IMG/VR virus record: IMGVR_UViG_3300024239_000011 | Coordinates: 372,001 to 436,000 of that record | Length of the DNA stretch: 64,000 bases | Direction: 5' to 3' (one strand) | Shown here: piece by piece, positions 8,871 to 35,741 of the stretch | Numbering within the stretch: the stretch's first letter is position 1 | Layout of the letters: each line of letters opens with the position of its first letter | Notes under the pieces: generated by a model | What the model was told of the DNA's origin: nothing | The model's input: only the letters and a program-made list of their open reading frames with translations | The model's database searches: none | Translations under genes and position numbers: made by a program

Positions 8871-10565
8871 TCAAAATGAGAATAGGTCAGTATCAAGCTC
8901 GACCTTAGGTTTCTTTCTACTACCAGCAGACTTGGTTCCCGCAGCGATTACCGATTGTGCATTTTTCGCAACTACGAACATGTCTTCGAAAGTCGTATTG
9001 TTACTAATACGAGACAAATCCCACTGAAGAATGCCAATCAGATTGTCAATCTTCACGTCGATCATCGAGTTTTCCATTTTCTCGTGATCGAATGGCATCT
9101 TCTTAAACCAATCAGGTAGATTATGTTCCGGTACATCTACCGGGCGGGCAATACTTTCAATTCCGTAGGGATTACTTTTCAACTGACAAACCACCACCTT
9201 GTCACCATCCTTAATCGGCGGTGTGGCATGGTCAGTCATGATTTCAAGCATGTTGTTGAAGTTGATCGCGGCGCGAACGTGACCGGGCATGTTGACCTTA
9301 CCGGTCTTGATGTCGATTTCACAATCTTCGTCGTCTTCGAAATTGATATCATCAACCTCAAGTTCTTCCAGCTTGTTGCCGTACTTGGTTAACCCCTTGA
9401 TGGCGGTGGGACGACCTTTCTGCCAACCGGGACGCGCTTGGAACTTTTCACGGAAATCGCGGACGTAATCGATCACTTCGTCTTCCGGGATACCCTTCAG
9501 AACCTTGATCAGCACCTCTTCAAGGAAGTCCTGCACAAACGCCGGGGTGTCCGAACGCTTGGTTTCAAGACCCATCGCCTTCAGCTTGCCGGGCTTGCCG
9601 TCCACGTCATACCGCTTGCCTTCGTTGTCGATGACCAGCGCGGCATACCGCTTCTTCTTGATGTACATGGCGTTTTCCGCCACGATTTCACGACCAGCCG
9701 CAATGATCGCGCCGCGCTCAAGACCAGTATTGAACGTCCGATCCATGAACTCAGGGAAGGACTCGTTGGTCACATCTGCGATGTCGTCGTACAGCTTGAT
9801 GATGGCGTCCTTGTCGGTCCAATCGAAGGTCGGCGCCATGCCACCGAACTTACCACCGAACACCCCGGTACCGCCGTCCCCAAGCGTGGTGACGGTTTCC
9901 ACGATGGGCGGGAATGCCTTCTCAAGCTTCGCGGTGAATTCGTTTTCCCATGCTTCGATATCGGCATCTTCGCCGCATTCACGGATTTCATCTTCACTGA
10001 GCGCCATTTGAAGTACATCTGTCTGCTCAGCGGTCAACTCCTTGAGAACCGCAATGATCGCATTGTCATCGCCGGATTCAGTCGCCTTGTGGAACTTCCC
10101 AAAGATTTCACCAAGCTGTTCTTCGGACGAAATCACGTTGGTTTTCGGGGTCGCTTTAGTCCAAGCGTTGTAAACGCTGAAATACGCGGAGTCGGTATCA
10201 CCATAAATCATCGCCGGTCCCAAGTGATTGTAGTCACCCGTGACCAATTCGTTGATCTTGCCCATCATGTGACGCACGATACAGCGACCCGTCAGGGTAA
10301 CAGACTGCCCGATCCGAGGATCGAACCAACGCGACCCTTCGTTCAAGATGCAACCATACAACGAGTTAAGCTTAATCTTTGCAATCAATTGTTGCATATC
10401 CCAGTATTCGTACTGGTCCATGTAATACTGCTTATTTGCAGGGAGAATATGTCCATCTTTGAAGATCAGATCATACTCGATCATATAAGCCTTGAGGGCT
10501 TCAACATCACGCGCCGATACCAAACCCTTTAGATGGTCCAAGCTATATTCTTTTACTTCGGACAA
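8871..10565 (-). CDS. Family B DNA polymerase, C-terminal subunit (second fingers helix, palm, thumb)
   Basis: Motif B KIKLNSLYG, motif C YGDTDS, KKKRYA, KAMGLETKRSDTP; TTG start. Confidence 0.95.
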   Translation of the reverse strand: MSEVKEYSLDHLKGLVSARDVEALKAYMIEYDLIFKDGHILPANKQYYMDQYEYWDMQQLIAKIKLNSLYGCILNEGSRWFDPRIGQSVTLTGRCIVRHMMGKINELVTGDYNHLGPAMIYGDTDSAYFSVYNAWTKATPKTNVISSEEQLGEIFGKFHKATESGDDNAIIAVLKELTAEQTDVLQMALSEDEIRECGEDADIEAWENEFTAKLEKAFPPIVETVTTLGDGGTGVFGGKFGGMAPTFDWTDKDAIIKLYDDIADVTNESFPEFMDRTFNTGLERGAIIAAGREIVAENAMYIKKKRYAALVIDNEGKRYDVDGKPGKLKAMGLETKRSDTPAFVQDFLEEVLIKVLKGIPEDEVIDYVRDFREKFQARPGWQKGRPTAIKGLTKYGNKLEELEVDDINFEDDEDCEIDIKTGKVNMPGHVRAAINFNNMLEIMTDHATPPIKDGDKVVVCQLKSNPYGIESIARPVDVPEHNLPDWFKKMPFDHEKMENSMIDVKIDNLIGILQWDLSRISNNTTFEDMFVVAKNAQSVIAAGTKSAGSRKKPKVELDTDLFSF

Positions 10566-11840: not shown

Positions 11841-12122
11841 TTAGTAACGATCAGTACCAGTAGTTCCGGCACTATTTACGGTGTTCTGCGTCGGCTCCAT
11901 AAGCTTTGCAATGTTAACACCGTTTATCACCAGACCAGTTATATCGACATTTTCAAATACCGCATGGCTCAGATCAACATCGTTGAAATTTGCCCCGGCG
12001 AGTGAAACATCGATAAACTCTGCGTCTCGCATGTTAGCGTCTTGGAAGCGGGCACTAACAAAATTTGCCCCGCAAATAATTGCCCGGTTTGGTTGATCGC
12101 TATCAGTTGTACGCTTTGGCAT
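11841..12122 (-). CDS. Pentapeptide repeat protein
   Basis: ANFVS ARFQD ANMRD AEFID VSLAG ANFND VDLSH AVFEN VDITG. Confidence 0.85.
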   Translation of the reverse strand: MPKRTTDSDQPNRAIICGANFVSARFQDANMRDAEFIDVSLAGANFNDVDLSHAVFENVDITGLVINGVNIAKLMEPTQNTVNSAGTTGTDRY

Positions 12123-12640
12123 TACGCCCTCCATTCACTGTTGTGATTAACAAAAGAATAATTTCTGTACAAATAAAGTGCAAATATGTTGCAAGACGCG
12201 CCAAGGACATCACCACACATCCCGGCATATGAATTTTCTGAGAAATTGTAGTAGAACCAAAAAGGTGCTGATAGCAAATTGAACAGTCTCAGTGTTTGTG
12301 GGTTTGTACTAAAACTGGCGTAAGTATTGAGTATAGATGCAATCCCGACCATCACGTTAGGCACCGTTACCGCAGTGGCACCGATCATGATGACAGGCAA
12401 AATGTAGAATATCGATTTGACATATGCATTATTGGTATTCAACGCAACTATACCTCTTACCCCAGCAATCCCATCTATGATAGCTCCGGAATATGCGTCC
12501 AACAGAAAGTAATGGACTACGTAACATCCAATACCGATAGTCCCCGCCATAATGATATGGCGTGTTGTCTTCCAAAAGGTCGATGTGACGCCAACAATTA
12601 AACCAACAAAACCAATGAGTTGAGCTACCGTTTCGAACAT
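12122..12640 (-). CDS. YgjV-like multi-pass inner membrane protein
   Basis: AQLIG...HYFLLDAYSGA...R...LR...WFYYN pattern, hydrophobic. Confidence 0.7.
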   Translation of the reverse strand: MFETVAQLIGFVGLIVGVTSTFWKTTRHIIMAGTIGIGCYVVHYFLLDAYSGAIIDGIAGVRGIVALNTNNAYVKSIFYILPVIMIGATAVTVPNVMVGIASILNTYASFSTNPQTLRLFNLLSAPFWFYYNFSENSYAGMCGDVLGASCNIFALYLYRNYSFVNHNSEWRA

Positions 12641-13071
12641 GGCACACGTTCCCAATGGTTCCACGGGTCATCCCAACTTGCGATATTGAACCCGTACACG
12701 GTCGCCAAGTGTTCGGATTGTGCATGTCCAGGGCGGATCGAAACCGTAAGAATCTTATCTGCATACAGGGTTAGGCGATGTTGCCACAGCAAATGTGCAA
12801 GCCTTTTTCCACGATGTGAGGGAAGAATGATCCCACCAAGCAAATGGGTCGAAGGCATGTCATACGGATAACATCCATTGACAATAACGCTACACCAGCC
12901 GACAACGGTTTCTTCTTCTTTCAACCACCATGATTTGATTGGTCCATACTGACAGTTCGTAATTTCTGCTGTCGTATACCAATCACCATCATGCATATTC
13001 TCGGACGCCAGTTGCTCATAGTAAGGCAAATCACGTTCCGTAAGTTCATGAAAACTATACTTCATTGGCAT
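12625..13071 (-). CDS. GNAT-family acetyltransferase
   Basis: ILPSHRGKRLA acetyl-CoA motif A; terminal ATVYGF. Confidence 0.75.
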   Translation of the reverse strand: MPMKYSFHELTERDLPYYEQLASENMHDGDWYTTAEITNCQYGPIKSWWLKEEETVVGWCSVIVNGCYPYDMPSTHLLGGIILPSHRGKRLAHLLWQHRLTLYADKILTVSIRPGHAQSEHLATVYGFNIASWDDPWNHWERVPCSKR

Positions 13072-16609: not shown

Positions 16610-16996
16610 TCAGTGATCCTTTATGTGCGTGTCATACGCGCTTTGATCCATAAGACGGTCCAACTCTTCCGGTGCCGTGATCCGCAGCTTGACGAACCAT
16701 CCTGCATCCATTGGCGAGATGTTGATCAATGAGGTGTCTGTGATCAGCGCATTATTGACCTCAACTACCTCACCGGAAAGCGGTGCAAACACATCACTGG
16801 CAGCTTTAACCGACTCGACTACGGCTAAATCCATCCCTCTAGAAACAGTTTTCCCGACCTCTGGGAGGTCAACAAACACAATGTCACCGAGTGCATGTTG
16901 CGCATAATTAGTGATGCCCACGGTGGCAATGTCGCCCTCCACGGAAACCCATTCATGTTCGGAGGTGAACTTGATCATTTCGTTTGAAAATCCCAC
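16610..16996 (-). CDS. gcvH: Glycine cleavage system H protein (lipoyl carrier)
   Basis: HEW, VGITNYAQ..LGDIVFV, VESVKAASD with the lipoyl-Lys, N.SP...GW. Confidence 0.95.
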   Translation of the reverse strand: MGFSNEMIKFTSEHEWVSVEGDIATVGITNYAQHALGDIVFVDLPEVGKTVSRGMDLAVVESVKAASDVFAPLSGEVVEVNNALITDTSLINISPMDAGWFVKLRITAPEELDRLMDQSAYDTHIKDH

Positions 16997-17481: not shown

Positions 17482-19113
17482 TCATGCCGCCAACATCTTA
17501 CCCAGGTCTTGGTCAATTTCGACACCCACTGCCATCTTGAAGTAGGTACCGGACTTCTTCTTCATCGACTTACGGTCGGCATACCACCGAGCCAACAAAC
17601 CCGGAATAACGCCTTCAATATCGGTACGAAAGATGGTGCCGTTGGCAGACAAGCAGAGGTTGCTCCCCTCGGCAAAAATCCACTCGTAGATTTCCTTTGC
17701 GGTCATTTCGTCCGAACGGGACATGGGTACCCCATTCTTGTCGAAATCAACGGTTAAGGTCACATCGCTCTGCTTCATAACCTCTTGGAATTCGACCGAG
17801 CCGAACATTTCATGCCATGCGTCCGTTGGACTCATACCGTCCGCGATACGTTGGTCAATGAGACGGCGCGTCATGGTCTGGCGAATTTGCCCAACCACGG
17901 TTTCCGGGGACATGTTCAATGCGCGAATGCACGACGGGTACAGCGAGTTAATGTCGCAGGCACCTACCCAGCGGTGTAGACCGGTAATAGGGTCACGAAC
18001 GTAAGCGCCCGCCGCCTTGCCTTCCTGCCGAAACCCACGCTTATCAAAGACAATGAAACCGCGCTCATGCGCCTCGTTCACAATGGCTTGGTCGATGATC
18101 GCCACCGAACCCATTGTCGCCTTGAAATCCACACAGATCGAGTGCGCAAGCTGATTGTGAAGCTCGATGAACTTCTTCTTGCGGTCAATCTTCACCAGCA
18201 GCATGGTATCCTGCCGGTTATAGGCGATGAACTTGTTGAAGTCCTTGTTATACAAATCGTGCAGCGACCCTTCGTAAGGGGTCTTGTTCTCATTCACCTC
18301 AAGCTCGCCCACGAAGTCCAGCTTGTAGCTATGAAGCTCCTGATAGGTGTTCTTCTTGTACAGTTCGAGATAGTCAAGGTGTGCCTTACCAACAGTGTCG
18401 AAGGTAAAGACTGTCTTGTTGAACTGCTCGTACTCGCGGCGTACCGGTTCTTTGTCCCACAAACACATACCCTTGGTGTATTCATCACCAAGCGCCTTCT
18501 TGATGCGCAGAACCATGTAGGGAATATCGAAGCCCGTCGAGTTCCAGCCGGTAAATACGTCAACGTCCTCAACGACTTTGAGAAACATTTCCAACATGTC
18601 CCGTTCATTCTTGAACAGGTAGGTGTTGTCAAATTCCGCAACCGCTTCCTTGGCCTCGTCCCATGTCATGGTCTTGGGCGGGACCGCAAGCGTGATCATC
18701 GTGTCAGCCCAACTCAGGTAGACCGAGATCGCATTTACCGGTGCGTAGGGGTTCTCTGGGTTTGAAAAACCGATATCCGGGGAATAATCAACTTCGATAT
18801 CCAGGCATCCTAAATTCAATACCGGTGTCGGTTTTCCGTGATAATGTTCGTATAAAGTATTGAACAATACATTGGTATCGCTTTCAAAAAGGGACTGACC
18901 ATCAAGTTCCTGTTTTTTTGCATAAAACTTGCTTCGATTATTTGTCTCAAATTTTGATAGACGTTCTCCAAAAATGGAGTTGTAGTCACCATTTTTATCA
19001 CGGTAGTAAAGCCTATATGACGGCTCTATCTTGCGTTCTACTCGTTTTCCTGCAACACGTTCAGAAACAAGAATCTTGTCCTCATCTCGATCAAGTATGG
19101 CATCAACATACAT
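17482..19113 (-). CDS. Family B DNA polymerase, N-terminal subunit (N-domain, 3'-5' exonuclease, motif A, first fingers helix)
   Basis: ExoI LDIE, ExoII WNSTGFDIPY, ExoIII YNRQD, motif A DINSLYPS, G.IPGLL..WY..RK. Confidence 0.95.
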   Translation of the reverse strand: MYVDAILDRDEDKILVSERVAGKRVERKIEPSYRLYYRDKNGDYNSIFGERLSKFETNNRSKFYAKKQELDGQSLFESDTNVLFNTLYEHYHGKPTPVLNLGCLDIEVDYSPDIGFSNPENPYAPVNAISVYLSWADTMITLAVPPKTMTWDEAKEAVAEFDNTYLFKNERDMLEMFLKVVEDVDVFTGWNSTGFDIPYMVLRIKKALGDEYTKGMCLWDKEPVRREYEQFNKTVFTFDTVGKAHLDYLELYKKNTYQELHSYKLDFVGELEVNENKTPYEGSLHDLYNKDFNKFIAYNRQDTMLLVKIDRKKKFIELHNQLAHSICVDFKATMGSVAIIDQAIVNEAHERGFIVFDKRGFRQEGKAAGAYVRDPITGLHRWVGACDINSLYPSCIRALNMSPETVVGQIRQTMTRRLIDQRIADGMSPTDAWHEMFGSVEFQEVMKQSDVTLTVDFDKNGVPMSRSDEMTAKEIYEWIFAEGSNLCLSANGTIFRTDIEGVIPGLLARWYADRKSMKKKSGTYFKMAVGVEIDQDLGKMLAA

Positions 19114-20788: not shown

Positions 20789-21027
20789 GCGTTCCATGGG
20801 TTGGCGAACGCAGCAGCCATTACCGGCACGCGGACGCAATTCGGATGTTTGGTGGAATCAGCCTAATCCGGAAACAATCGTTCCAGCATTAGGCGCGTAT
20901 ACCGCATAGTCAGATAGTGCGGTCATACCTTGATGAAAACCTCGGCATATAGAGGTTTTCAAAGAGATATCATTGCCACGCAAGTATCTCTGAGCGTTAC
21001 TATACAACTCAAACAAATATCTGTCAA
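20789..21027 (-). ncRNA. Candidate structured non-coding RNA or leader behind a consensus sigma70 promoter
   Basis: TTGACA-N17-TATAGT (20999-21027) followed by five hairpins; no minus-strand ORF of 60 aa or more. Confidence 0.45.
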
Positions 21028-21676: not shown

Positions 21677-21744
21677 GGCACGTTGTCTCCGAATACTTGA
21701 CCATCATAATATTCGTGACTCGTATTTGTCAAGTGATGCACAAG

Positions 21745-21811: not shown

Positions 21812-22297
21812 TTACGTCGGGAAGTTGAACTTACCGAAGCCACTGGCGGCGCGCTTGACGCCGGTCGGGTCGGTGTTGTCGTCATTGACCACCGGAGCGG
21901 GGGTCGAAGTGGGAACGGAAACCGCCGGGACACTGGACATGGGCTGGGTGGTCGAAGTCGATCCGGTCGTCACGGCGGTGCCATGCAGCGCATCGAACTC
22001 GTCAGGGGTCATGGCGTGCTGATTGGTGGCGTCGTAGTTGGACGCCGACTCGTTCGGCGGCAGATACAGGGTGGCGACGACGTGCTGACCGTCCTCGCTG
22101 CGGACGACGGTGATCTGCTCTTCACGATAGCTGTAGTTGGACAGCGCCAGGACGTTGGTGTGCAGGTAATCGCGCACCTGACGGGTGCGGACCCACGTAC
22201 CACGCTTCTTGACTTCGTTGGCGATATCCACGCTGGTGAACATCTTGCCCTGCCCGATGTATTCCTGAACAACGGCTTCGATCTTATCCTGGCTCAT
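21812..22297 (-). CDS. Hypothetical protein, probable winged-helix N-domain and Thr/Ser/Pro-rich tail
   Basis: FTSVDIANEVK...RQVRDYL helices followed by a beta wing; TTGACT-N17-TATTAT at 22327-22355. Confidence 0.65.
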   Translation of the reverse strand: MSQDKIEAVVQEYIGQGKMFTSVDIANEVKKRGTWVRTRQVRDYLHTNVLALSNYSYREEQITVVRSEDGQHVVATLYLPPNESASNYDATNQHAMTPDEFDALHGTAVTTGSTSTTQPMSSVPAVSVPTSTPAPVVNDDNTDPTGVKRAASGFGKFNFPT

Positions 22298-22370
22298 GGC
22301 AAATACCCCGAGAAATGGTTTAAAAAATAATAGATGTTTTCTTTTAAAAAGTCAACCCACCACACAAATT

Positions 22371-22404
22371 TCGCGAGGTATCTGCCCCTGTAGATACCTC
22401 GCGA
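22371..22404. terminator. 13-bp stem just past the PARP stop
   Basis: tcgcgaggtatct-N8-agatacctcgcga. Confidence 0.6.
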
Positions 22405-22411
22405 CTTGTTT

Positions 22412-23932
22412 CTAGCGTTGTTCCAGTTCGATCAGGTGAGTAATCGTGGACTGGGCGGGATCAGCGACGATGAATTCATCGTTCGCCAGATCAGCACCAC
22501 CAGGGGCGTAGATCGAGTTGAAACCACGCGGAGTACCCGACGATAGGGCACGCGGGGCACAGTGAATCTTGCCCATGGTGAACTTGGTGATGAACAGGAA
22601 GGCGTTGCCGCGATGACCGCTGTTGGACAGACCCGACCGCGACCAGTTATTGAGGGCGTAATTCAGAGCCTTCGTGGACACGTTGGCGGCATAGACGCCA
22701 TTACCGTACATACGACCGGTCACGCCCGGCGCGTTCACCGGGGGAACGTAGAAACCATTCATCATGATCGACAGGACGTTGCGGTTCGGGGAACCATGGA
22801 ACAGGTCCACCACGTCATAGTCGCTGACGATGGTCTTGCCACCGCCGGGACGCTTGTGACCGATGATGGTACCAGCAGCACCCTGCTTGGCAGCTTCCAT
22901 GCGCTCCATCATCTTCATGAAACGGGCACGTTCCGCAATGCCTTCCACGTCGTAGCAACGAACCGGCTTCCAGCTATCCAACTGACGATGGTTACGGGTG
23001 CTGTTGAGGTAGTGAAACAGCGTTTCGGTGGTGTCGCGATCCGACATGAACATCTTGATCGGCAGATCGGGCGCCTTACCGTCGTCGGCGTCGTTGGTGA
23101 TCTGCACAGTGGACTTCATCTGGTCCAGCAGATCGTATTCCGCCAGCAACTTCGCCATGTCGAAAATCAGGTCGCTGTCCTGAATAGTATAACCGCGAGC
23201 AAATGGGCGCGGAATCAGCGAGAAAGTCTGGGTATTCAAATCACGGAAATCGCGATTGGACATGTCGGCGCTCGAACCATCGGTCGGGATGAAATTCTTC
23301 AGATCATCCAGCACCGCCAACGCCCGGTTGATGTGATCCAAGGTCAGCGGACCCAGCGGGGTTTCCAGACCATGGGCGGTCATCTTGAATGTAGTCGCCG
23401 TGGTAATGTTGTGAATGTTCTCTTGGAACAGTTGACTGAGAACCTTCTGAACCTGCGGCTCGGAGAACTGACTGAACATGGCAGCCAGACCGCTGTTGCC
23501 ATTCGTTTTCGAGACAGAGGCAGTCGCGGCAGCACCACTCACCTTGCGGATATTGGGCGAACCCACGGTCGGCTGAACCACGTCCACCTTGACGTAGTTT
23601 TCGCGATACTTAGTGCCGTCAGCGGCAGTCTTGGACTTGCCCTTTTCCTTGTCCTTGACGATGGTGGCGAACTCGGCTTCCAGCGACGACAGGTCGGTGT
23701 CGGGACCGCGAACGTCGTACACACCGCCGTCAGCGGTACCGCCCGCCAGACGACCGTAGTGCGAGAACAAGCGATATTGCCCGGTGGACTCGTTGTGCAT
23801 TAGTTCCAAACAGTAGAATTTGTTATTATTCCCGTCCACGTTGCTACACATGAGCAAAGCCCACTTAATAGTTTTATCAAAACCATCCGTGTCGTCAGTG
23901 GGGACTTTAACTGCGCGATAGGACTTGGACAT
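22412..23932 (-). CDS. Poly(ADP-ribose) polymerase (WGR + regulatory helical + catalytic domain)
   Basis: NNNKFY...HYGR (WGR); TPLGPLT..HI..A (regulatory); LFHGS, GRMYGNGVYAA..STKALNY, NDEFIV (H-Y-E triad); TTGACA-N16-TAAGAT at 23962-23989. Confidence 0.92.
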   Translation of the reverse strand: MSKSYRAVKVPTDDTDGFDKTIKWALLMCSNVDGNNNKFYCLELMHNESTGQYRLFSHYGRLAGGTADGGVYDVRGPDTDLSSLEAEFATIVKDKEKGKSKTAADGTKYRENYVKVDVVQPTVGSPNIRKVSGAAATASVSKTNGNSGLAAMFSQFSEPQVQKVLSQLFQENIHNITTATTFKMTAHGLETPLGPLTLDHINRALAVLDDLKNFIPTDGSSADMSNRDFRDLNTQTFSLIPRPFARGYTIQDSDLIFDMAKLLAEYDLLDQMKSTVQITNDADDGKAPDLPIKMFMSDRDTTETLFHYLNSTRNHRQLDSWKPVRCYDVEGIAERARFMKMMERMEAAKQGAAGTIIGHKRPGGGKTIVSDYDVVDLFHGSPNRNVLSIMMNGFYVPPVNAPGVTGRMYGNGVYAANVSTKALNYALNNWSRSGLSNSGHRGNAFLFITKFTMGKIHCAPRALSSGTPRGFNSIYAPGGADLANDEFIVADPAQSTITHLIELEQR

Positions 23933-24021
23933 ATTGATGCTCCAACGAATCATTTGACCGCATCTTAACGTCAAAAATTAAATTGTCAATGGGAAGAACA
24001 ATAAATATAATATAAGAAACT

Positions 24022-25182
24022 ATGGAGAAAATTATGCCAATCTGTAAACATTGTGGCACAGAAACCACACATATCCCAACTCATTATCGACTGCACTGCC
24101 AAGAGTATAAAGAATTCATCACCCAAATTGAAGAGAAACTTACCAAAGAATTTATGATCGCCGAATACATTATTGCTGAAAAATCAGTGGTTGATTTAAC
24201 ACGAGAACTTGGTTTGGAAAAAGGGCGATTGATTGAACAGAAACTCGATGAATATGGTATCGTGCGCCGTCGTAATTACTCATCCACTAAAACCGTCCGT
24301 GATAAGAAGAAACAAACCTATCGTGAACGGTATGGCGTCGATCATCAATCTCAGATCGATACAGTCAAAGAAAAGAAGAAACAAACCTATCGTGAACGGT
24401 ATGGCGTAGAGCATGCGTTGCAATATGCAGAATTTTTTGAAAAAGCTCGACAGACTACCCGCGAACGTTTTGGGGTTGACTACGCCCTTCAAACCGAGGA
24501 GTCCCGCGCAAAACAACGCCAAACTAATTTAGAACGTTATGGTGTTGAGTATTTGCAATCGCGCAATATGCAGGAACAATCAAAACAAACATGTTTAGAA
24601 AAATATGGGGTTGAATATGTGATGCAATCAAACGACATCAAAGCACGCATGGTTGCCACCCACACCGATTTATATGGCGGGATGCTCCGTGGATCACCGT
24701 CCATACGGGGACAAATAGAAAGGACAACTCTCAAACGGTATGGCGTGAAGAATATTTCTACTATAACCCGCGATAAAGCAAAAGCAACCTGTGTACGTCG
24801 TTATGGTGTTGAATTTGCTATGCAAAACCCAACGATTTATGAACAGCAACGCAAATCTGCGTTCCGACGCAAACTATTTGTTTTCCCATCAGGTCACAAA
24901 GAATATCTTCACGGCTATGAGCCGATGGTTATTCTCGACCTACTCAAAGCCGGAATACCCGAAGAGGAAATCATCACTTCTGCCCGCAAAATGCCAAAAA
25001 TCACCTACCAAACCTCCGATGGTAAAACCCACCGCTACTACCCAGACATCTACCTGCCACGATACAATATGTTCATTGAAGTGAAATCCATCTATACGTA
25101 TCGCGCCAACAAAGATATCAACCTACTAAAACGAGAAGCCTGCATTGATGCAGGCTTCCGTTTTAATTTTGCAATACGCTGA
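24022..25182 (+). CDS. Free-standing endonuclease-like protein with ~23-aa (R/K)YGV repeats and C-terminal PD-(D/E)XK domain
   Basis: CKHC...HC finger; about 8 YGV/FGV repeats; RYYPDIY...IEVKS; ATAAATA at 24001. Confidence 0.8.
   Translation: MEKIMPICKHCGTETTHIPTHYRLHCQEYKEFITQIEEKLTKEFMIAEYIIAEKSVVDLTRELGLEKGRLIEQKLDEYGIVRRRNYSSTKTVRDKKKQTYRERYGVDHQSQIDTVKEKKKQTYRERYGVEHALQYAEFFEKARQTTRERFGVDYALQTEESRAKQRQTNLERYGVEYLQSRNMQEQSKQTCLEKYGVEYVMQSNDIKARMVATHTDLYGGMLRGSPSIRGQIERTTLKRYGVKNISTITRDKAKATCVRRYGVEFAMQNPTIYEQQRKSAFRRKLFVFPSGHKEYLHGYEPMVILDLLKAGIPEEEIITSARKMPKITYQTSDGKTHRYYPDIYLPRYNMFIEVKSIYTYRANKDINLLKREACIDAGFRFNFAIR
24304..24407 (+). repeat. 35-bp exact direct repeat with 69-bp period inside the endonuclease gene
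   Basis: aagaagaaacaaacctatcgtgaacggtatggcgt at 24304 and 24373. Confidence 0.85.
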
Positions 25183-25187
25183 TCCGG

Positions 25188-25412
25188 TCACTTATCTACT
25201 TTTACCGGGAGATCAGGAATCTCCCGCGAAGAATAAGCGCAGATAATTTTGGTTTCCGGATGGGTCAGCCACCCACCACCAGCACCACTGCGCCACTCAA
25301 CATAAGTAACGACTTGCGGATTACAGTTTTGTGAAGGGCGAGTAGTGGGTTCGGTACCTTCAACACACCCAAATAGTGCTAAACAAGCACCAACAACTAA
25401 CATCTTACGCAT
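25188..25412 (-). CDS. Small putative lipoprotein
   Basis: MRKMLVVGACLALFGC lipobox; overlaps the metG stop. Confidence 0.55.
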   Translation of the reverse strand: MRKMLVVGACLALFGCVEGTEPTTRPSQNCNPQVVTYVEWRSGAGGGWLTHPETKIICAYSSREIPDLPVKVDK

Positions 25413-26928
25413 TCTTCGGTACCTCAATACGCGGGAAGACAATTGACGGTTCGGGAAGCTTCGCCTCGTAGGGGATGAGAACGTCCTGATGCCGAATTTC
25501 CGCACTGCACAGTTTTAGAATTTTTTCCGCCGATGCGGGAATGACCGGCTGAAGCAGGAACGCCACCTTGACGACGTTCTGAAGAGTGTCGCTCAACACC
25601 TCGTTCAGCTTGTCCGGATCATCTTTCAGCTTCCACGGCTCAGCCGCCGAGAACACACGATTGATATCCGTGGTTGCCGCATGAAGGTGTTCCAGGGCGC
25701 CACGGAAATCCAACGCAGCAAATGCCGCTTGGGCAAAGCTGGCGTAGGTTTCCACCCGGCTGGTCAAGGAAGACCCCACCGCCGAAAACCGCACGATGCC
25801 ATCACAATGGCGATGCAACAGGGTTAGTGCCCTGTTCAACAGGTTACCCAGATCATTGGCGAGTTCGCTATTGTACCGCTTCGTGATGGCATCTTCCGAG
25901 AATTCTCCATCATCACCGAAATTGACTTCACGAAGCAGGAAATACCGCAGCGCGTCCAACCCGTATTTTTCGATTAACGCGGGGACACTGACCGCATTCC
26001 CTTCAGACTTGCCAATCTTCTGCTGTTTGACCAGTTTGTTGCTCGGACGCGTCCACCAACCATGGGCGAATACGCGATTGGGAACCGGCAGACCCGCAGC
26101 CAAAAGAAAAGCAGGCCAAAACACAGCATGGAAACGAACGATATCCTTGCCAACGACATGGGTTACGTCATAACCAGTCCAATCGGTTGCGGGATACCCG
26201 GCAACGGAAAGGTAATTGGTCAGCGCATCCAACCACACATAAATGACGTGTTTTTCGTCCCCAGGCACCGGGATGCCCCAGGAAATGGACGACCGCGACA
26301 CACAAAGGTCATCAAGCCCGCCCTTGACAAATTGCCGCACCTCATTCCGGCGCGGCACCGGCTGAACAAAATCCGTTTCGTACAACTTCAGGAGTTCGTC
26401 GCCCCATTGCGAGAGCCGGAAGAAATAGGCTTCCTCTTCCACCCACTCACACGTGGCGCCGGTTGGATTTGCAGTGACAATCTTACCACCATCAGTATTT
26501 TCGGTAATCGTCACCTCGGACTCTGTGTAATAGGCTTCGTCCTTGAGAGCATACCACCCACCATAGGTGCCCTTGTAAATTTGGTTACGCTCGACCAGGG
26601 TGTTCCATAAATGAATTACCGCTTCGCGGTGCCTGTCATCGGTGGTGCGGATAAAATCGTCGGGAACAACCCCGATCAACGGAAGCAAATTGCGAAAATG
26701 TTGGGAAACATCGTCCACGAAGTCCTTCGGTGCAATTCCTGCCAGTGCAGCCGATTTCTGGACCTTCTGACCATGTTCATCGGTTCCAGTGGTGAACAAC
26801 ACCTCATCGCCATGAAGGCGGTGGAAACGCGCCAAAACGTCGCAAACCACAGTGGTGTACGCATGACCGATATGGGGACGGTCATTCACGTAATAGATGG
26901 GGGTCGTGATTAGCCGCTGTTTGTTCAT
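25405..26928 (-). CDS. metG: Methionyl-tRNA synthetase (short monomeric MetRS1 type)
   Basis: ITTPIYYVN..PHIGHAY, GTDEHGQK, YVWLDALTNY, GKDI.RFH..FWPA, KIGKS (KMSKS-like). Confidence 0.96.
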   Translation of the reverse strand: MNKQRLITTPIYYVNDRPHIGHAYTTVVCDVLARFHRLHGDEVLFTTGTDEHGQKVQKSAALAGIAPKDFVDDVSQHFRNLLPLIGVVPDDFIRTTDDRHREAVIHLWNTLVERNQIYKGTYGGWYALKDEAYYTESEVTITENTDGGKIVTANPTGATCEWVEEEAYFFRLSQWGDELLKLYETDFVQPVPRRNEVRQFVKGGLDDLCVSRSSISWGIPVPGDEKHVIYVWLDALTNYLSVAGYPATDWTGYDVTHVVGKDIVRFHAVFWPAFLLAAGLPVPNRVFAHGWWTRPSNKLVKQQKIGKSEGNAVSVPALIEKYGLDALRYFLLREVNFGDDGEFSEDAITKRYNSELANDLGNLLNRALTLLHRHCDGIVRFSAVGSSLTSRVETYASFAQAAFAALDFRGALEHLHAATTDINRVFSAAEPWKLKDDPDKLNEVLSDTLQNVVKVAFLLQPVIPASAEKILKLCSAEIRHQDVLIPYEAKLPEPSIVFPRIEVPKNA

Positions 26929-28044: not shown

Positions 28045-30498
28045 TTAGGCAGCTTTCTTGCCCAAAATCGCAGCTTCCTTAGCGGCTTCTTTCTGATCCT
28101 TCACACGCTGAAGGCTATCCGCCACGGTCTTGTCAAGTCGCAGTTCCACGAATCTCGGGAGGAAAAGTGAGTACCGACCGTTGCTTCCCGTGGGCGGCAT
28201 GATGTCGTTGGCTTTGACGGTCATGATCTTACCGATCACATTATCACGATCCTTCCAAAGCTGCTGACGCATGGCATCGGTATAGCCCGACACGTCAACC
28301 GAAAGCAAACCATCCGACGTGCGGCAGGTAATCGATCCGAATGTGCTTTCGTTCTTACCGTTACCGGCGACGAAGCCGACGATTTCCAGATCAACCTCAA
28401 ACTCCATCTTGAGCTTGACCTGTTCCTTTGAAGTGCCATCCTTCCAGATAGCGCCCGGCATCTTGATGACGGTGCCTTCCTTGCCGCGACCCAGCATGTC
28501 GATATAGTGTTCGTAGGCTTCGCGCAGCGAATGAACCACGCGGGTCGGGATCAGGCGAACCAGACCAGTTTCGGTCAGCTTCGTCATCAGGGCGCCCAGT
28601 TCGTCTTCCGGCAGCGTCTTGATCGCAGCCAGGGTCATACCCGCCAACTGCGCCACCAGAGACAGCAGACGTTCGCGGTACGCGACGTTGTACTTGCCCT
28701 TTGGCTTCACTTCTGACAGCGGGATTTGGTCCCAGATCATGTAGATCGGCTGCTCGTTGGCAGCGAAGGTACCGCCCTTGAGAACGCTATTGAGGATACC
28801 GTTACCGATCTCGCGCGGCAGAACCTTGCCGTCACGCAACACCAGCAATTCGCCGTGTTGCTGCGTGCCCGTGGACAGGCGAGAACGGATTTCGTCCACC
28901 AGGGCGGGGAACTGCTCGATGGGGAACGGCGAACCCTGACGGCTGGCGATACCAACCACACCCGCAGCTTCGTTGTCCACGTTGGCGAACATACCGTCCG
29001 CCTTCTCCTGGGATAGCACACCAAGCTTCCAGTCCCACGTGTCCAGCTTCACATCTTTAGGAAGCGAACAGCGCATGTACGGGAACTCGGGGATCAACCC
29101 CTTCACCGCCTTGTTGATGGTGCTTTCAGAGAAATTAGCGCGCAAATCCTTGCGCACGATGCGCCACAATAGATCAGCCGAAGCCTGGGTCAGGCGTTCA
29201 GTTTCCGCCCGGAACGCTTCACGGGCATCGCCGCCGGTCAGCTTGCGGGCGATCAGTTCATCGAGAATCTGCCACGTCTTGGCGTCGAAGGTGGCGGCAC
29301 CAAACGGACCCGTGGGACGCGCCGGAATGATGCCGTAGGTCTTGAAGGGGTTGTAGGTGTATTCCAGCACCCGGCAGAAAGCGGCGTCGCCCGCCGCGCC
29401 CTTAACCATCGACTCCTTGGCGTTCTTGCTCGATTCACCCGCGATCTTGTCGATCAACGCGAGGATGGCATCGGACCCGCCATTAGACGAAGCGGCAACC
29501 ACGGGCGCCGACTTGCCCATATCAAAATCGATCCAAGCAGCCGACGTACCGGCGGTGTAAAGGGCATTGGAATTCTTGATCAGGACGCCACCAACCTGGG
29601 CACAATAATCCGCGAATTCCTTGGCGGCATCCGGGGCGTCGAAATCGATCAGCTTCTTCGGAGCAACATAGACGTTGCCATCGGTGAAATGCTGGAACAT
29701 CCCGGTAAGGGCAGCCAGCACCTCGACGCGATCCTTCTGGGTGATCGAGCAGGTACCCGCCTTGAAATCCGCAAACGGGATCACATCGACCACCGCGAAC
29801 TTGGTCGGAGTGGCAGCCGTGAACCCGCCATCCAAAACGATGCTGCCCGGCACTCCGGGCAGCATCTTTTCCAGACCCTTTACGATATCCGGATAGCTGT
29901 GGTTCTCGCGCCCGAAGCTGGCATGCAGGGTTACGGTACCCGCATCCTTATTGATCACCGCGAACAACCGGGACGCCAGTTTGACATCCAAATACTGGGG
30001 ACCGGTCGGCAGGGTCGTGGAAACCGTCGCCACTTGGGCGCCGAAAATGGGGATCAGATACTTAGTGGCATCACCACCGATCTGGCTCAGAACCGCATTA
30101 ATCTCGTAGGGACGGATATTGCAGCGAAGGTCGCGCAGCAGAATGCGGCGGTACCAAAGATTCCATTCCTTAGCATCGGAAAGATTCGCCGCCTTCATCG
30201 CAGCAGCGCGGGCGTTATCGCCCGACAATTCACGGGACGCCAGCTTGCTGGTCAAGTTGGTGAAATCCGCCCACGACAGGGTATCGACCGCAAACAGGTC
30301 ACCCAGATCATTGCCGTCTTCCTGAATTTCAGGAGCCTTGGTCAGACCAAAGGTCTGATAGTTGTCGTAACAGAGCCGGGCGCCTTCGAAGAACTCGATG
30401 CATCCCGCATCCCAGGCAGCGCGAATGATGGTTTCCTTCGCAGCCGTATCGCTGGCAGCGGTAGCGGCAAGTTTCTCGACAACGTGAATGGGCTTCAT
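28045..30498 (-). CDS. ATP-dependent DNA ligase with an extra degenerate ligase module at the N-terminus
   Basis: C-terminal module: EKADG, SRQG, HGEL, WDQIP, EGTVIK, VKLK, LPRF; the N-terminal module repeats DBD+NTase with degraded motifs; TTGATT-N17-TAGGAT at 30526-30554. Confidence 0.9.
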   Translation of the reverse strand: MKPIHVVEKLAATAASDTAAKETIIRAAWDAGCIEFFEGARLCYDNYQTFGLTKAPEIQEDGNDLGDLFAVDTLSWADFTNLTSKLASRELSGDNARAAAMKAANLSDAKEWNLWYRRILLRDLRCNIRPYEINAVLSQIGGDATKYLIPIFGAQVATVSTTLPTGPQYLDVKLASRLFAVINKDAGTVTLHASFGRENHSYPDIVKGLEKMLPGVPGSIVLDGGFTAATPTKFAVVDVIPFADFKAGTCSITQKDRVEVLAALTGMFQHFTDGNVYVAPKKLIDFDAPDAAKEFADYCAQVGGVLIKNSNALYTAGTSAAWIDFDMGKSAPVVAASSNGGSDAILALIDKIAGESSKNAKESMVKGAAGDAAFCRVLEYTYNPFKTYGIIPARPTGPFGAATFDAKTWQILDELIARKLTGGDAREAFRAETERLTQASADLLWRIVRKDLRANFSESTINKAVKGLIPEFPYMRCSLPKDVKLDTWDWKLGVLSQEKADGMFANVDNEAAGVVGIASRQGSPFPIEQFPALVDEIRSRLSTGTQQHGELLVLRDGKVLPREIGNGILNSVLKGGTFAANEQPIYMIWDQIPLSEVKPKGKYNVAYRERLLSLVAQLAGMTLAAIKTLPEDELGALMTKLTETGLVRLIPTRVVHSLREAYEHYIDMLGRGKEGTVIKMPGAIWKDGTSKEQVKLKMEFEVDLEIVGFVAGNGKNESTFGSITCRTSDGLLSVDVSGYTDAMRQQLWKDRDNVIGKIMTVKANDIMPPTGSNGRYSLFLPRFVELRLDKTVADSLQRVKDQKEAAKEAAILGKKAA

Positions 30499-30944: not shown

Positions 30945-31193
30945 ATGACAACTAATATTTTAGAAGACCTTATCGGATCGGACGATAAAATCGTAAAAAC
31001 AACAGCCGTCAAATTAAAGGCATATCAAGGTGCTTTGGAAATGGGTGAAATGTCCAAAGCGGAATACGACGAACTGATAGCAGACTTACTTGATCTTTCA
31101 GGAATTGATCATCTGGCGTCCGATCTTGAACGAAAGACTGCTATAAGAAAAGCATTTGAAACTATGTTAAGTATAGCATCAGTAGTGGCTTAA
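30945..31193 (+). CDS. Hypothetical protein paired with the lipoprotein
   Basis: 82-aa helical ORF 1 nt downstream. Confidence 0.65.
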   Translation: MTTNILEDLIGSDDKIVKTTAVKLKAYQGALEMGEMSKAEYDELIADLLDLSGIDHLASDLERKTAIRKAFETMLSIASVVA

Positions 31194-31840
31194 CGGGAAA
31201 ATACCTGTTCCATAAGGTCTTCAAGTTCTTCAGTCTTGACCACCGTGAACCCCATCCGATTAAGCTCTTCAATGAACATTTGCGGAGTTTTTTCATCAAC
31301 TTTACGATAGTCGTTCGGGAGTTCTTGCCACGGACGAAGCATCGGATGGGTTTTTGCACGAGGATTCACTTTTTCACCATAGCGCCAACCTTTCTGTACC
31401 CGTTCGTTCATCCACATAGTATGCTGTGATTTAGCAATCGCTTCGCATAGTTTTTCATAAGAATCGTCTTTGACCACAATGGCGTCAGCGAGCATTTCGC
31501 GCTGCTGTGATATTTCAACCTGGGTTGTTTCTAATAAAAAGTCTTTGTCGTAGTAGGTATTCCACTGCTCTAAAACGGTCTTGATTTCTTTGTTGGTCAA
31601 ATCACGCTTCAAAGGAATGTCGTAGATATGTTTTCCATCAGCCATTTTACGGTGAATCAACATAACTTCAGCGGGACCACCTTTCGGGCGCACTAATGAT
31701 ACTGATGAAATGATGTTCTGCGGTCCATAAGTCTCTACGATCTTAAACCACCGACGAACGTCGGTCTTACTAAGCTCTTCATCGACTTGGATTCGGATAT
31801 AGCGTGGTAGTTTGACGGCCACTGGTTGGGACGCATCCAT
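31190..31840 (-). CDS. RyR-domain protein
   Basis: H..WM.ER...GWRYG.....KTHPMLRPW.ELP. Confidence 0.85.
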   Translation of the reverse strand: MDASQPVAVKLPRYIRIQVDEELSKTDVRRWFKIVETYGPQNIISSVSLVRPKGGPAEVMLIHRKMADGKHIYDIPLKRDLTNKEIKTVLEQWNTYYDKDFLLETTQVEISQQREMLADAIVVKDDSYEKLCEAIAKSQHTMWMNERVQKGWRYGEKVNPRAKTHPMLRPWQELPNDYRKVDEKTPQMFIEELNRMGFTVVKTEELEDLMEQVFSR

Positions 31841-32841: not shown

Positions 32842-35028
32842 TTACACAATATTCCATTCGTTGCCATTCCACACCAAGGTTACAGCTTCGTAACCGTACT
32901 CAATAACCTTGGTAGCAGCGCCATCAATGGTTTCCGAGCCATTCGGTGTAATGGTGATGTTGTTGGTACCAGCATCGCCCTTACCGTCCTTGATCACGTA
33001 CACCTTACCAGCACCAGCATCGGCGCCAACCGGGAGATTGACGGCGGTTGCTTCACCGGCAGTCTTGTTGACAATGATGGTGTGGTCGGTGTTCGCAACG
33101 GTGACAGCACCAGCGGCGGTTACGATGCGAATCTTGTACTTGTCGGCGGACACGAAATTGTCGGACACCCACTTCTTGGAGACAAGGGCGTTGTTCGACA
33201 CAACATTTGCTTCGTAACCGGTCGGTGCCAGGATTTCGCCCATACCCTTCGGCTCAAGCGAAACGTCGATGTTGCTGTCAGCACCAGCAGCAGCAATCTT
33301 CACAGCGCCACCAGCAGCGGCGTTAGTGAATTCAATGCTGTTCACGCCCGAAGCGACACCAGCAAACTTAGCGATGTTTTCAGAGCCAGCGGTCTGGACG
33401 TAGATCACACCGTCAACACCGGATGCACTGTCGCCGCCACGCAGAACGATGTCACCACCAGCAGCAGCGCCGGTACCGTCACCACCTTCGAGGATCAGAT
33501 CACCCTTTTTGGTGCCGGTATTGGTACCACCACGCAGGGTAAGGGTCTGATCATCGTCAGCCTGGATTACACCATCGGTATTTGCGGCACCAATGAACAC
33601 CTGACCATTGTCCTGTGGAACAAGGCGGATGTTGACATTACCAGACCCGGCTTGGTTCTTTGCAATAAGTTGCACTTCTCCACCGGTAGAACGCTGGGTG
33701 ATTTGCATATAATCACCATCGGCATTACCAGCATTACCGAATACTTCCAGAACTTCCTTGTTGGATGCGTGACCCGAAGAACCACTGTAGAAAATGATCT
33801 TATCATTATCAGCAGAAGCTTCCACATCTACCTTGGTATCACCATCGGTATCGGTCAAGCTGTTGGTAGAAATGTCTGCCCAAGACAGCGCACCGCTAAC
33901 CACACGCAGGATTTGACCTTCGGTTCCCAGACTATCAAGACCAGTACCACCGTTTTCAACCGCCAGCACACCCGTGATCGTGGAAAGATCGTTGGTGGCA
34001 TATTCCAGTGCAGTACCTTCGGCATTTACACGAAGAACCTGATTTGCAGTACCAATTGTGGTAAGACCAGTACCACCCTTTGTGGTGGACAGAGTACCAC
34101 CAATATTATCCAGGGTCAGGTCGGCTTCATTCACGTCAATGGTCAACGCAGAAATGACCGAGCCAGTACCACCAGTCAAGGTAATCTTGGTCGAAGCAGC
34201 GGTTACATCTGCAAGAGCAGTGACGCCGGTACCACCATTTGCAACGTCGAGAGTGCCAGTGACGCCATTGTCAGCCGAGAGATCGATAGCACCCCAGGCA
34301 GCAGTACCGGAACCGTTAGAAACAAGAACCTGCCCAGAAGTAGCGGACGACTTAATAGCAAGCTTATCGCTACCATCGATGTAAACGGTTACGTCATCAA
34401 CATTTACGTCAAGAACGTTTCCAGCCTTGGAAAGACCGGCACCCGGAGTGGCAACACCAGCAGCCGAGAACTGGGTGAAGCCCAGATCGTCAGTACCAAG
34501 GACTACATTACCATCAATATTAGACAGAACCCAGCCGGTATCTGCGTTTACAGTACCTTCTTCAACGAAGACGAACATACCACCAGAAACTTCGTTGCTT
34601 GGGGTATTATCAGCATCGGTGGAACGGGTCCATGATTCGGATGCAACAACATAGATACCATTGGTCTTTGCATCGTTCTGTGCCTTAACCAGAATACGAT
34701 CACCAACCTGAAGGGTCACACCGTCAACGGTCTGAACACCAGACAAAGTGATGTCGGTAATGGTGGCAGCACGAACCGATGCCTTAATATCAAGACCCTG
34801 AACAACGGCATCAACATAATTCTTAGATGCCATCTGTTCAGCAGACAGTTCAAGGGCAGAACCATCTTCAGCGACAACGATGGCTTTACCACCATTGCCG
34901 GTCAACGAAAAGGTTTTAATAGTTTCAAGTTTAGTATCATAACTCTGAACTACATTAGTAGACAGAGCATTAGAAATGCGTGCATCAGCAAGGGTCTGAA
35001 TTACGCCAGTATTAGTGCGAAACGACAT
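32842..35028 (-). CDS. Virion fibre/structural protein (paralogue of 35787-38072)
   Basis: ASKNYVD..VQGLDIK.SVR, DGVTL.VGDR, GGTG repeats; TAAATA at 35075. Confidence 0.8.
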   Translation of the reverse strand: MSFRTNTGVIQTLADARISNALSTNVVQSYDTKLETIKTFSLTGNGGKAIVVAEDGSALELSAEQMASKNYVDAVVQGLDIKASVRAATITDITLSGVQTVDGVTLQVGDRILVKAQNDAKTNGIYVVASESWTRSTDADNTPSNEVSGGMFVFVEEGTVNADTGWVLSNIDGNVVLGTDDLGFTQFSAAGVATPGAGLSKAGNVLDVNVDDVTVYIDGSDKLAIKSSATSGQVLVSNGSGTAAWGAIDLSADNGVTGTLDVANGGTGVTALADVTAASTKITLTGGTGSVISALTIDVNEADLTLDNIGGTLSTTKGGTGLTTIGTANQVLRVNAEGTALEYATNDLSTITGVLAVENGGTGLDSLGTEGQILRVVSGALSWADISTNSLTDTDGDTKVDVEASADNDKIIFYSGSSGHASNKEVLEVFGNAGNADGDYMQITQRSTGGEVQLIAKNQAGSGNVNIRLVPQDNGQVFIGAANTDGVIQADDDQTLTLRGGTNTGTKKGDLILEGGDGTGAAAGGDIVLRGGDSASGVDGVIYVQTAGSENIAKFAGVASGVNSIEFTNAAAGGAVKIAAAGADSNIDVSLEPKGMGEILAPTGYEANVVSNNALVSKKWVSDNFVSADKYKIRIVTAAGAVTVANTDHTIIVNKTAGEATAVNLPVGADAGAGKVYVIKDGKGDAGTNNITITPNGSETIDGAATKVIEYGYEAVTLVWNGNEWNIV

Positions 35029-35132: not shown

Positions 35133-35612
35133 TTACACTACATACCAGTTAGAACCATCACACATTAACGTCACAGATTCTCTATCTTGATTTATAATTA
35201 GGGAATTTTGACCATCAATAGTTTGCCCACCCTGTCCCATGATTGTTATGGGATTAGTTGATGCTGCCCCACCCGCGTCTTTCACAATAACTTCTTTACC
35301 CGCAAGTACACTTGTATTACCCAAGGTTACAGTACGAGGACCATTTATCGAATTCATCAGAACGACTTGATCTGGCTGAGCAGTTTGGTAATCAGTATTC
35401 TTGACTTGAACAACTTTTAAGGTGCTGTCAAGCTGAACCCAAAAACCACTAATTTTCTGGTAAAAACGCGGTAGCGTCCCAGTACGGATATAGAGATCAC
35501 CGTCCGTCCCAACACCGTTCGGCGCGGTATTACCCTGATAAATCGTGGGTCCGCCCTTACCGATGCGAAACGACGAAAAGGATGTCCCTTTAAGATTATT
35601 CGTCGTTGCCAT
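35133..35612 (-). CDS. Small virion structural protein
   Basis: G.DGDLYIR motif; C-terminal VKD..G.A..N.ITI...TIDG domain shared with 32842-35028; TAAATA at 35679. Confidence 0.7.
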   Translation of the reverse strand: MATTNNLKGTSFSSFRIGKGGPTIYQGNTAPNGVGTDGDLYIRTGTLPRFYQKISGFWVQLDSTLKVVQVKNTDYQTAQPDQVVLMNSINGPRTVTLGNTSVLAGKEVIVKDAGGAASTNPITIMGQGGQTIDGQNSLIINQDRESVTLMCDGSNWYVV

Positions 35613-35741
35613 ATATCTTCCAATTCGCAAGTCAGACTTACATCTGTCGGGCATTAACCCGTCTAAACGAACCAAACTTATTTAGTCAAAGGGGACTATA
35701 CCAGGGGTCGGTGAAGTACAACAAATTAAAAGGTCAAAAGA

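Follow-up and report, generated by a model that had tools for sequence, protein, structure and literature searches.

The 64,000-nucleotide stretch analyzed here (the window) covers positions 372,001 to 436,000 of IMGVR_UViG_3300024239_000011 (= Ga0247724_1000001), a 543,035-bp viral contig, and contains a gene for a relative of PARP1-3, the DNA-dependent poly(ADP-ribose) polymerases (PARPs). The gene occupies 22412..23932 on the minus strand and encodes 506 amino acids followed by a stop codon, with a WGR domain, a helical domain (HD) and an ADP-ribosyltransferase (ART) domain. Directly downstream and on the same strand lies a small gene for a winged-helix-like protein, here called the partner, whose homologues recur beside PARP genes in other phages.

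The PARP gene and its expression signals

The sole long open reading frame (ORF) at the PARP site runs from 22412 to 23974 on the minus strand and includes a TTG-initiated extension. This longer form was dismissed and the start was placed at the ATG at 23932, because a Shine-Dalgarno GGAG, read from the sequence, lies 7 nt upstream (23940..23943, minus strand) and because the two nearest homologues, P0001 and P0002, begin at the same position when aligned. A 413-aa antisense ORF (22562..23803, plus strand) was also rejected as a gene. It is a by-product of the high third-position G+C content (GC3) of the coding strand, and its apparent conservation in 26 loci reflects conservation of the PARP on the opposite strand.

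The gene is preceded by a sigma-70-like promoter (TTGACA, 16 nt, TAAGAT; 23962..23989, minus strand) that matches the consensus at 10 of 12 positions and whose -10 box ends 30 nt upstream of the ATG. PARP is one of four consecutive genes (20.2-23.9 kb), each with its own strong and correctly oriented promoter of this type (minus strand, 21027..20999, 21732..21703, 22355..22327 and 23989..23962). These four make up half of the eight strong minus-strand matches in the window. Across the whole window such matches are not enriched (15 observed vs 12 in shuffles), and a local scan returned 11 vs 2.5 expected. The promoter pattern fits transcription by the host RNA polymerase and, judged from these motifs, expression is probably early.

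Eight nucleotides after the stop codon, a GC-rich 13-bp hairpin (22371..22404, minus strand) has a predicted folding energy of -26.6 kcal/mol (z = -5.2), and none of the shuffled sequences folded equally well. The stem is genuine, but its tail, AAUUUGUGUG, is a poor U-tract. We did not adopt the reading as an intrinsic terminator, and the hairpin is possibly not one since the tail lacks a clean run of U. An earlier sequence-only reading of this DNA had placed the gene at these coordinates and given it its own sigma70-like promoter and a stem after the stop, and all three held up.

Domain architecture and predicted fold

All three domains exceed the curated Pfam cut-offs, namely WGR (PF05406, aa 29-98, 24.7 bits against a cut-off of 22), PARP_reg (PF02877, aa 158-281, 37.6 bits against 26.8) and the PARP catalytic domain (PF00644, aa 374-455, 56.5 bits against 26.7). 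With alignments added, the WGR domain spans approximately aa 20-118 (23579..23875, minus strand) and carries the NNNK (K38) and YGR (R61) motifs, K95 and Y113. The regulatory, autoinhibitory HD spans approximately aa 158-284 (23081..23461, minus strand) and includes PLGPL, L208 and L268/L269. The ART domain spans approximately aa 290-506 (22415..23065, minus strand), with H379, G380, M408, Y414, K421, A422, Y425, N484 and E486, and contains a lineage-specific insert at about aa 346-372. PHROGs assigns the protein to phrog_23333, annotated as "polymerase".

A single-sequence search of Protein Data Bank (PDB) sequences matched PARP2 and PARP1 with E ~2e-8. A family alignment was built from 25 relatives that are 39-69% identical to the window protein, and the resulting profile matched full-length human PARP2 across WGR, HD and catalytic domain (CAT) with E 3e-43 and the WGR-CAT portion of PARP1 with E 4e-40. 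The AlphaFold (AF2) model of the window PARP has a mean predicted local distance difference test (pLDDT) score of 83.8 and a predicted template modeling (pTM) score of 0.83, with low confidence in the WGR-HD linker (132-147) and in two loops of the ART domain. The model places a beta-rich fold at aa 7-111, corresponding to WGR, and HD helices at 159-179, 198-212, 227-239 and 259-284. The top Foldseek matches were WGR-CAT chains of PARP1 and PARP2 in complex with DNA breaks (E 7e-24 to 6e-21, template modeling (TM) scores of 0.43-0.64), followed by PARP1 catalytic domains and then PARP4. Taken together, the sequence, the profile and the predicted fold agree with the PARP2/3-type WGR-HD-CAT architecture proposed in the sequence-only reading, and confirm that the window gene encodes an intact WGR-HD-ART relative of PARP1-3.

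DNA-end-binding and helical-domain residues

In PARP2, the 5' phosphate of a DNA break is held by Y201, K130 and K183, and the break is bridged by R153 (PMC8150716). The equivalents of K130, K183, Y201 and R153 in the window protein are K38 (within NNNK), K95, Y113 and R61, and all four are invariant in the 25 relatives; the 590-residue PARP2 chain of the profile alignment runs 7 ahead of the numbering in PMC8150716, which is the numbering used here. The Trp that gives the WGR domain its name (PARP2 W151) corresponds to Tyr59, and most bacterial PARPs likewise have YGR in place of WGR (PMC5966428). Mutation of two leucines in the HD core deregulates PARP2 and PARP3 (PMC5966428). These map to L208 and L269 if isoform-2 numbering was used in that work, an assumption that makes this assignment less certain. 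The sequence-only reading had suggested a break-activated enzyme, and the invariant 5'-phosphate ligands and R153 equivalent make that suggestion stronger than was first visible. Based on these residues, we infer that the window PARP would be gated by DNA breaks.

The catalytic center

Every motif quoted in the sequence-only reading was located: NNNKFY (35-40), YGR (59-61), PLGPL (192-196), LFHGS (H379), GRMYG (M408), GVYAA (Y414), STKALNY (K421, Y425) and NDEFIV (E486). All of them align with the correct PARP2 residues. H379, Y414 and E486 align to the H, Y and E of the PARP2 triad, so that the triad and the Met and Lys of the PARP signature (M408 and K421) sit where they had been reported. 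M408, K421 and Y425 align to PARP1 M890, K903 and Y907, residues of the acceptor-site lining (PMC3868897). E486 stands at the position of PARP1 E988. All 25 aligned family members keep H379, G380, Y414, K421, N424, Y425 and E486, and M408 is almost invariant.

Other positions depart from PARP1 and PARP2. The position of PARP1 Ser904, which bonds nicotinamide, is Ala422 in the window protein and Ala or Ser across the family, and the position of PARP1 Tyr986 is Asn484, which is invariant in the family. The G454-E486 stretch numbers 32 residues vs 65 in PARP2 (~33 fewer), and thus most of the acceptor loop is absent. Furthermore, PARP3 carries out mono-ADP-ribosylation only (PMC8053099) and PARP4 is named a mono-ADP-ribosyltransferase by its PDB depositors; H-Y-E is necessary but not sufficient for chain synthesis. 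The description of a "complete polymerising active site" in the sequence-only reading is thus overstated. The triad, M408, K421 and Y425 are present, but the triad is insufficient to specify chains, and the Ala at Ser904, the Asn at Tyr986 and the ~33-residue shorter segment depart from a complete site.

A bacterial comparison points the other way. The PARP of Clostridioides difficile (CdPARP) auto-PARylates, that is, attaches poly(ADP-ribose) (PAR) to itself, in the presence of NAD+ and activated DNA (PMC5966428). Its catalytic spacing (H322/Y359/S367/Y370/E428) is nearly identical to that of the window PARP (H379/Y414/A422/Y425/E486), the CdPARP residue numbers being taken from PMC5966428 and not from a direct alignment. 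By analogy, PAR synthesis by the window PARP is plausible, and the sequence is compatible with either poly or mono products.

A conserved partner gene downstream of PARP

The partner gene (21812..22297, minus strand) encodes 161 amino acids and has its own sigma-70-like promoter (TTGACT, 17 nt, TATTAT; 22327..22355, minus strand). The protein begins with a winged-helix-like domain (aa 1-100), continues with an acidic low-complexity linker and ends in a conserved F-x-K-F-N-F-P tip. It has no Pfam or PHROG match, and a profile search against PDB sequences returned nothing. The AF2 model exceeds a pLDDT of 90 for aa 1-100 and shows an H-H-H-beta-beta topology of helices and a hairpin, for which Foldseek found weak matches to the winged helices of PadR, LmrR and TFIIE (E 7e-3 or weaker). 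Many homologues of the partner carry an extra C-terminal AbrB/MazE-like domain; the window protein has the acidic linker and tip instead, and the tip is common to its nearest relatives. The GC3 of the PARP and partner genes is 0.70 and 0.81, respectively, vs 0.37-0.45 in structural genes.

The pairing of the two genes is widespread. ORFs within 6 kb of PARP were clustered across 64 PARP loci, the set left after duplicate removal, and the partner was the sole broadly shared family. It lies within 6 kb of PARP in 40 of the 64 loci and always on the same strand. Of these 40 loci, 39 have it downstream of PARP, 30 have it no more than 1 kb away, and in 17 the two genes are direct neighbors (examples are L003:11465-11965, L006:11093-11581, L008:11423-12007 and L047:6989-7813). 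Partner homologues stand beside PARPs that are only 25-50% identical to the window PARP. In an IMG/VR scan with a 10-sequence alignment, all seven close partner homologues were on PARP contigs, and at least 16 of 106 database homologues are on contigs equal in size to contigs of PARP matches. A PARP is present in 11 of the 22 metagenome partner loci that have at least 3 kb of upstream sequence, and the idea that the partner is an exclusive PARP accessory was dismissed because the other half are without one. The partner is also absent from phage XacN1, where a gene for a vWA-domain protein follows the PARP (L130 7279-7929). We found no earlier description of the PARP-partner pairing in the literature. 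In our interpretation, the partner would be a DNA-binding co-factor or substrate of the PARP.

Distribution of phage PARPs and prior knowledge

PARP relatives are present on at least 63 viral contigs in an IMG/VR scan, mostly of 100-550 kb, and a 90%-clustered protein collection contains at least 231 proteins at E <= 0.001. Among the matches listed, most are 455-490 aa long with the same three domains, and several are on contigs of 300-850 kb. An exhaustive search of 50%-identity representatives returned 1364 clusters at E <= 0.001, with 41 at <= 1e-30. As a separate observation, one PARP relative (P0032) is on an 853,705-bp contig and the window's own partner protein (P0268) is recorded on contigs of up to 869,618 bp; some of the phage genomes or assemblies with PARP or partner may be far above 543 kb.

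Full-length relatives in GenBank come from phages XacN1, Xoo-sp13 and Stenotrophomonas CM1 and RAS14 and are 27-28% identical to the window protein, while Klebsiella 05F01-type and Cellulophaga phi4:1-type phages gave shorter matches with only HD and ART or ART. Several GenBank phage proteins are already labelled poly(ADP-ribose) polymerase. Aeh1 was noted in 2005 (PMC1266365), Iyer et al. drew attention to phage PARPs in 2021 and 2022, with XacN1 BBA65562.1 cited as an example (PMC7824862), "PART (PARP)" is among the most frequent viral ART families (PMC9503650), and PARP has been drawn as a repair factor of jumbo phages (PMC11662467). The sequence-only reading was thus right that phage PARPs have no established role, but it overestimated their novelty, as the GenBank annotations, the PHROG family and the last three of these reports demonstrate. 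The window PARP adds to the already catalogued but uncharacterized PARPs of jumbo phages, and it is a well-supported annotation and no new kind of system.

Carrier phage and gene neighborhood

Megablast of the locus and the first 25 kb of the window against 50,697 phage records returned no relatives at the DNA level, and the phage is without a close cultured relative. The window polymerase is closest to those of the jumbo phages Atu_ph07, Phosso and PA5oct, with 42-46% identity. A syntenic 56-kb contig (L001) carries a methionyl-tRNA synthetase (MetRS) gene, a PARP (68% identical), the partner and then the N half of a family-B DNA polymerase (PolB). An ART-PolyVal gene is located at the end of L001 (14502-14962), ~9.5 kb from its PARP; no such gene is present in the window.

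Upstream of PARP in the window are a DUF7487 homing-endonuclease-like gene (24022..25182, plus strand), MetRS (25405..26928, minus strand) and an ATP-dependent DNA ligase of 817 aa (28045..30498, minus strand). The DUF7487 gene abuts PARP and is divergent from it in the window, and convergent with it in a 544-kb contig (L005:11349-12359). Its GC3 of 0.40 is far below the 0.70 of PARP, which suggests a mobile insertion. The ligase is unusually long, with ligase and OB domains only at aa 495-765 and ~340 N-terminal residues that match neither Pfam nor PHROGs, and its GC3 (0.71) is PARP-like. The PolB gene is split into an N half with the exonuclease and N-terminal domains (17482..19113, minus strand) and a C half (8871..10565, minus strand). 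The halves are ~7 kb apart, with genes for the glycine-cleavage H protein GcvH (16610..16996, minus strand), a GNAT protein (12625..13071), a YgjV-like inner-membrane protein (12122..12664, minus strand) and an endonuclease-like protein between them, and in L001 the N half is likewise a separate gene, of 543 aa. A 5'-3' exonuclease (5703..6674) and a metallophosphoesterase (4089..4994) are also encoded.

The remaining genes include one for a GGDEF-EAL protein (1456..2871, minus strand; Pfam E 7e-40 and 4e-67), through which the megaphage could potentially both synthesize and break down cyclic-di-GMP. Virion and tail-fibre-like genes occupy about 32.8-54.6 kb. Two paralogues of ~730-760 aa (32842..35028 and 35787..38072, minus strand) share an N-terminal domain that matches PHROG families of tail-fibre, head-decoration and virion proteins, and a T4 gp9/10-like gene (35133..35675) adjoins them. 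An M15 peptidase (57008..57484), a ClpB-like double-AAA chaperone/ATPase (60992..63274, minus strand) and an RyR-domain protein (31190..31840, minus strand) were also annotated. The auxiliary genes of cell-like kind thus comprise those for MetRS, the ClpB-like chaperone, GcvH, the YgjV-family protein and the RyR-domain protein. We found no tRNA genes in the window.

Apart from the partner, the neighbors of phage PARPs are less constant. Within 6 kb of PARP, an Rnl1 gene (T4-type RNA ligase 1) occurs in 7 loci, an ATP-dependent DNA ligase gene in 5, and a Macro gene in 5 by BLAST and 6 by clustering. RtcB is near related PARPs in 2 loci and NADAR in 1, and some lineage-specific nucleotide-metabolism genes form smaller recurrent sets. 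The ligase, Macro and other minor neighbor numbers are raw counts without a background rate and serve as leads only. Some related phages encode NAMPT and an NMNAT-like protein within 10 kb of PARP, and in another locus NADAR occurs with an intein-containing RtcB within 10 kb (L007:20806-21437 and L008:18236-18685 for the NAMPT/NMNAT-like and NADAR/RtcB loci).

Proposed function and alternative explanations

We lean towards an interpretation in which the window gene encodes a phage ADP-ribosyltransferase of the PARP1-3 and bacterial PARP type that is gated by DNA breaks and acts in phage DNA transactions, and we consider this somewhat probable. PARP would be transcribed from its own host-type promoter amid a run of individually promoted genes. 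Its WGR domain would use K38, K95, Y113 and R61 to bind a 5'-phosphorylated end or nick in DNA, and DNA binding would lift the block that the HD places on the NAD+ pocket. H379-Y414-E486 would then move ADP-ribose from NAD+ to the enzyme itself, to the partner or nearby DNA-bound proteins, or to the DNA end, and the mark could label or cap broken or replicating phage DNA for the ligase, nuclease and polymerase of the phage. The co-oriented winged-helix-like protein would be the most likely co-factor or substrate. The domain architecture and fold, the conserved catalytic and DNA-end-binding residues, the auto-PARylating bacterial homologues and the linkage to the partner favor this proposal, as do the ligase, Macro, RtcB and NADAR genes near related PARPs and the presence in the window of an ATP-dependent DNA ligase, a split family-B polymerase, a 5'-3' exonuclease and a metallophosphoesterase.

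Several observations weigh against it. The literature searched yielded no biochemical or expression study of a phage PARP. The Ala at the Ser904 position and the short acceptor region make both activity and product type uncertain. The 11 of 22 testable partner loci with no PARP within 5 kb indicate that the partner does not strictly depend on PARP, and the linkage to ligase and Macro genes is confined to a minority of loci and has no background rate. Pfam gave no match to PARG, Macro or NADAR among window ORFs of at least 120 aa, and a Macro HMM (hidden Markov model) derived from the macro genes linked to PARP in phages gave no match among window ORFs of at least 50 aa. These empty searches agree with the sequence-only reading, in which no PARG or macrodomain was visible in the window, and the search of these 64 kb revealed no PARG, Macro or ARH eraser gene alongside the PARP. 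Lastly, the genes around PARP are small, have promoters of their own and lack a known function, a context that suits host takeover equally well.

A host-takeover enzyme, as put forward for phage PARPs by Iyer et al. (PMC7824862), would modify RNA polymerase, translation factors or defense proteins in the manner of T4 Alt/Mod, possibly with chains, and WGR would only position it on DNA. The four-gene run with host sigma-70-like promoters is typical of early genes and no repair-specific partner has been shown, both of which speak for takeover. However, takeover ARTs of the T4 type belong to the R-S-E clade and have neither WGR nor HD, and a complete autoinhibitory HD with invariant 5'-phosphate ligands favors DNA-end gating over constitutive action, which leaves takeover, in our judgment, a less probable explanation that nevertheless deserves attention. 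A further possibility is that the enzyme acts mainly on the 5' phosphate at ends or nicks of phage DNA, which ADP-ribosylation would cap against host exonucleases or prime for the phage ligase. PARP2 and PARP3 ADP-ribosylate 5'-phosphorylated DNA breaks in preference to themselves, and ATP-dependent ligases can join the resulting ADP-ribosylated DNA even when no ATP is present (PMC8053099). DNA ligase, Rnl1 and RtcB recur near phage PARPs, and in the window the ligase is 4 kb away. This explanation draws purely on analogy, the ligase linkage is limited as described above, and the conserved neighbor is the partner and no ligase; we regard it as rather unlikely.

The remaining two explanations concern the fate of NAD+ and of catalysis itself. 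Hyperactivation of PARP1 leads to NAD+ depletion in eukaryotes, and mass activation of the phage enzyme by breaks could by the same token drain NAD+, acting as a sink or suicide switch that starves NAD+-dependent host defenses or excludes rival phages. The NAMPT and NMNAT-like genes near PARP in some relatives suggest that NAD+ balance matters. Nevertheless, draining NAD+ would harm the phage too, the window holds no NAD+ salvage genes, and the conserved acceptor residues M408, K421 and Y425 suggest transfer and not hydrolysis, so that we consider an NAD+ sink improbable. Alternatively, the protein could be a DNA-end-binding scaffold with vestigial ART activity, catalytically weak or regulatory, as the Ala at the Ser904 position and the truncated acceptor loop might indicate. 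Against this, the NAD+-site residues H, G, Y, K, Y and E do not vary among 25 relatives that are 39-69% identical to the window protein, which is expected only if catalysis is under selection, and we deem a scaffold highly improbable.

Beyond the break-gated enzyme that we favor, a broader and more speculative model can be drawn, which we hold to be doubtful at present. PARP and partner may together constitute a DNA-end marking module of two genes that occurs widely among huge phages. PARP would in this case sense 5'-phosphorylated ends and ADP-ribosylate the partner and/or the DNA end, thereby protecting or routing broken or replicating phage DNA. Such a module would be the prokaryotic-virus counterpart of PARP-with-accessory-factor signaling and a candidate for an ancestor-like state of eukaryotic PARP1-3.

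In eukaryotes, PARP1-3 serve as central sensors of DNA damage. With its 5'-phosphate ligands, autoinhibitory domain and triad intact, the window gene indicates that selection retains a full break-sensing PARP in many huge phages, and the conserved downstream winged-helix-like partner is the most useful new lead and a testable one. If the phage enzyme is DNA-activated, it would offer a simple bacterial system in which to study how PARPs are allosterically controlled, how DNA ends are ADP-ribosylated and how conflicts over NAD+ play out in infected cells, and it would bear on the origin of eukaryotic PARPs from phage or bacterial conflict systems.

Comparison with known systems

PARP2 is one of the closest known systems. 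The window PARP has the same three-domain order without zinc fingers or BRCT, with an agreeing fold, and it keeps the K130/K183/Y201/R153 ligands, the H-Y-E triad and, in the acceptor site, the counterparts of Met, Lys and Tyr907. However, the structure-based identity is only 16-19%. Unlike PARP2, it is phage-encoded, lacks the basic N-terminal tail, has YGR and not WGR, carries a ~27-residue insert before the His strand, and differs in the Ser904 (Ala) and Tyr986 (Asn) positions and in the ~33 residues missing before the catalytic Glu.

CdPARP (strain CD160) and the Herpetosiphon aurantiacus PARP (HaPARP) are similar in their WGR-HD-ART arrangement and in size (~47-52 kDa), and YGR is common in bacteria. 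Both auto-PARylate with NAD+ and activated DNA (PMC5966428, PMC8120803). CdPARP keeps the Ser where the window PARP has Ala422, and both bacteria encode a PARG that reverses the modification, whereas none was found in the window. The jumbo-phage PARPs of XacN1 (ORF414, BBA65562.1), Xoo-sp13, Stenotrophomonas CM1 and RAS14, and PHROG 23333, give matches that cover 96% of the query. They differ from the window PARP in sequence (only 27-28% identity), and XacN1 has the vWA-domain gene, and not the winged-helix partner, directly downstream.

T4 Alt, ModA and ModB are also phage-encoded NAD+-dependent ADP-ribosyltransferases, but they belong to the R-S-E clade, attach mono-ADP-ribose only, and have neither WGR and HD nor DNA-break gating (PMC8120803, PMC9503650). 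The window PARP, with H-Y-E and three domains, is not a single-ART-domain R-S-E enzyme of this type. It has the features of the DNA-dependent PARP clade, with a WGR domain N-terminal to the catalytic domain, an HD between the two, an ART fold with H-Y-E, and the residues that contact DNA ends.

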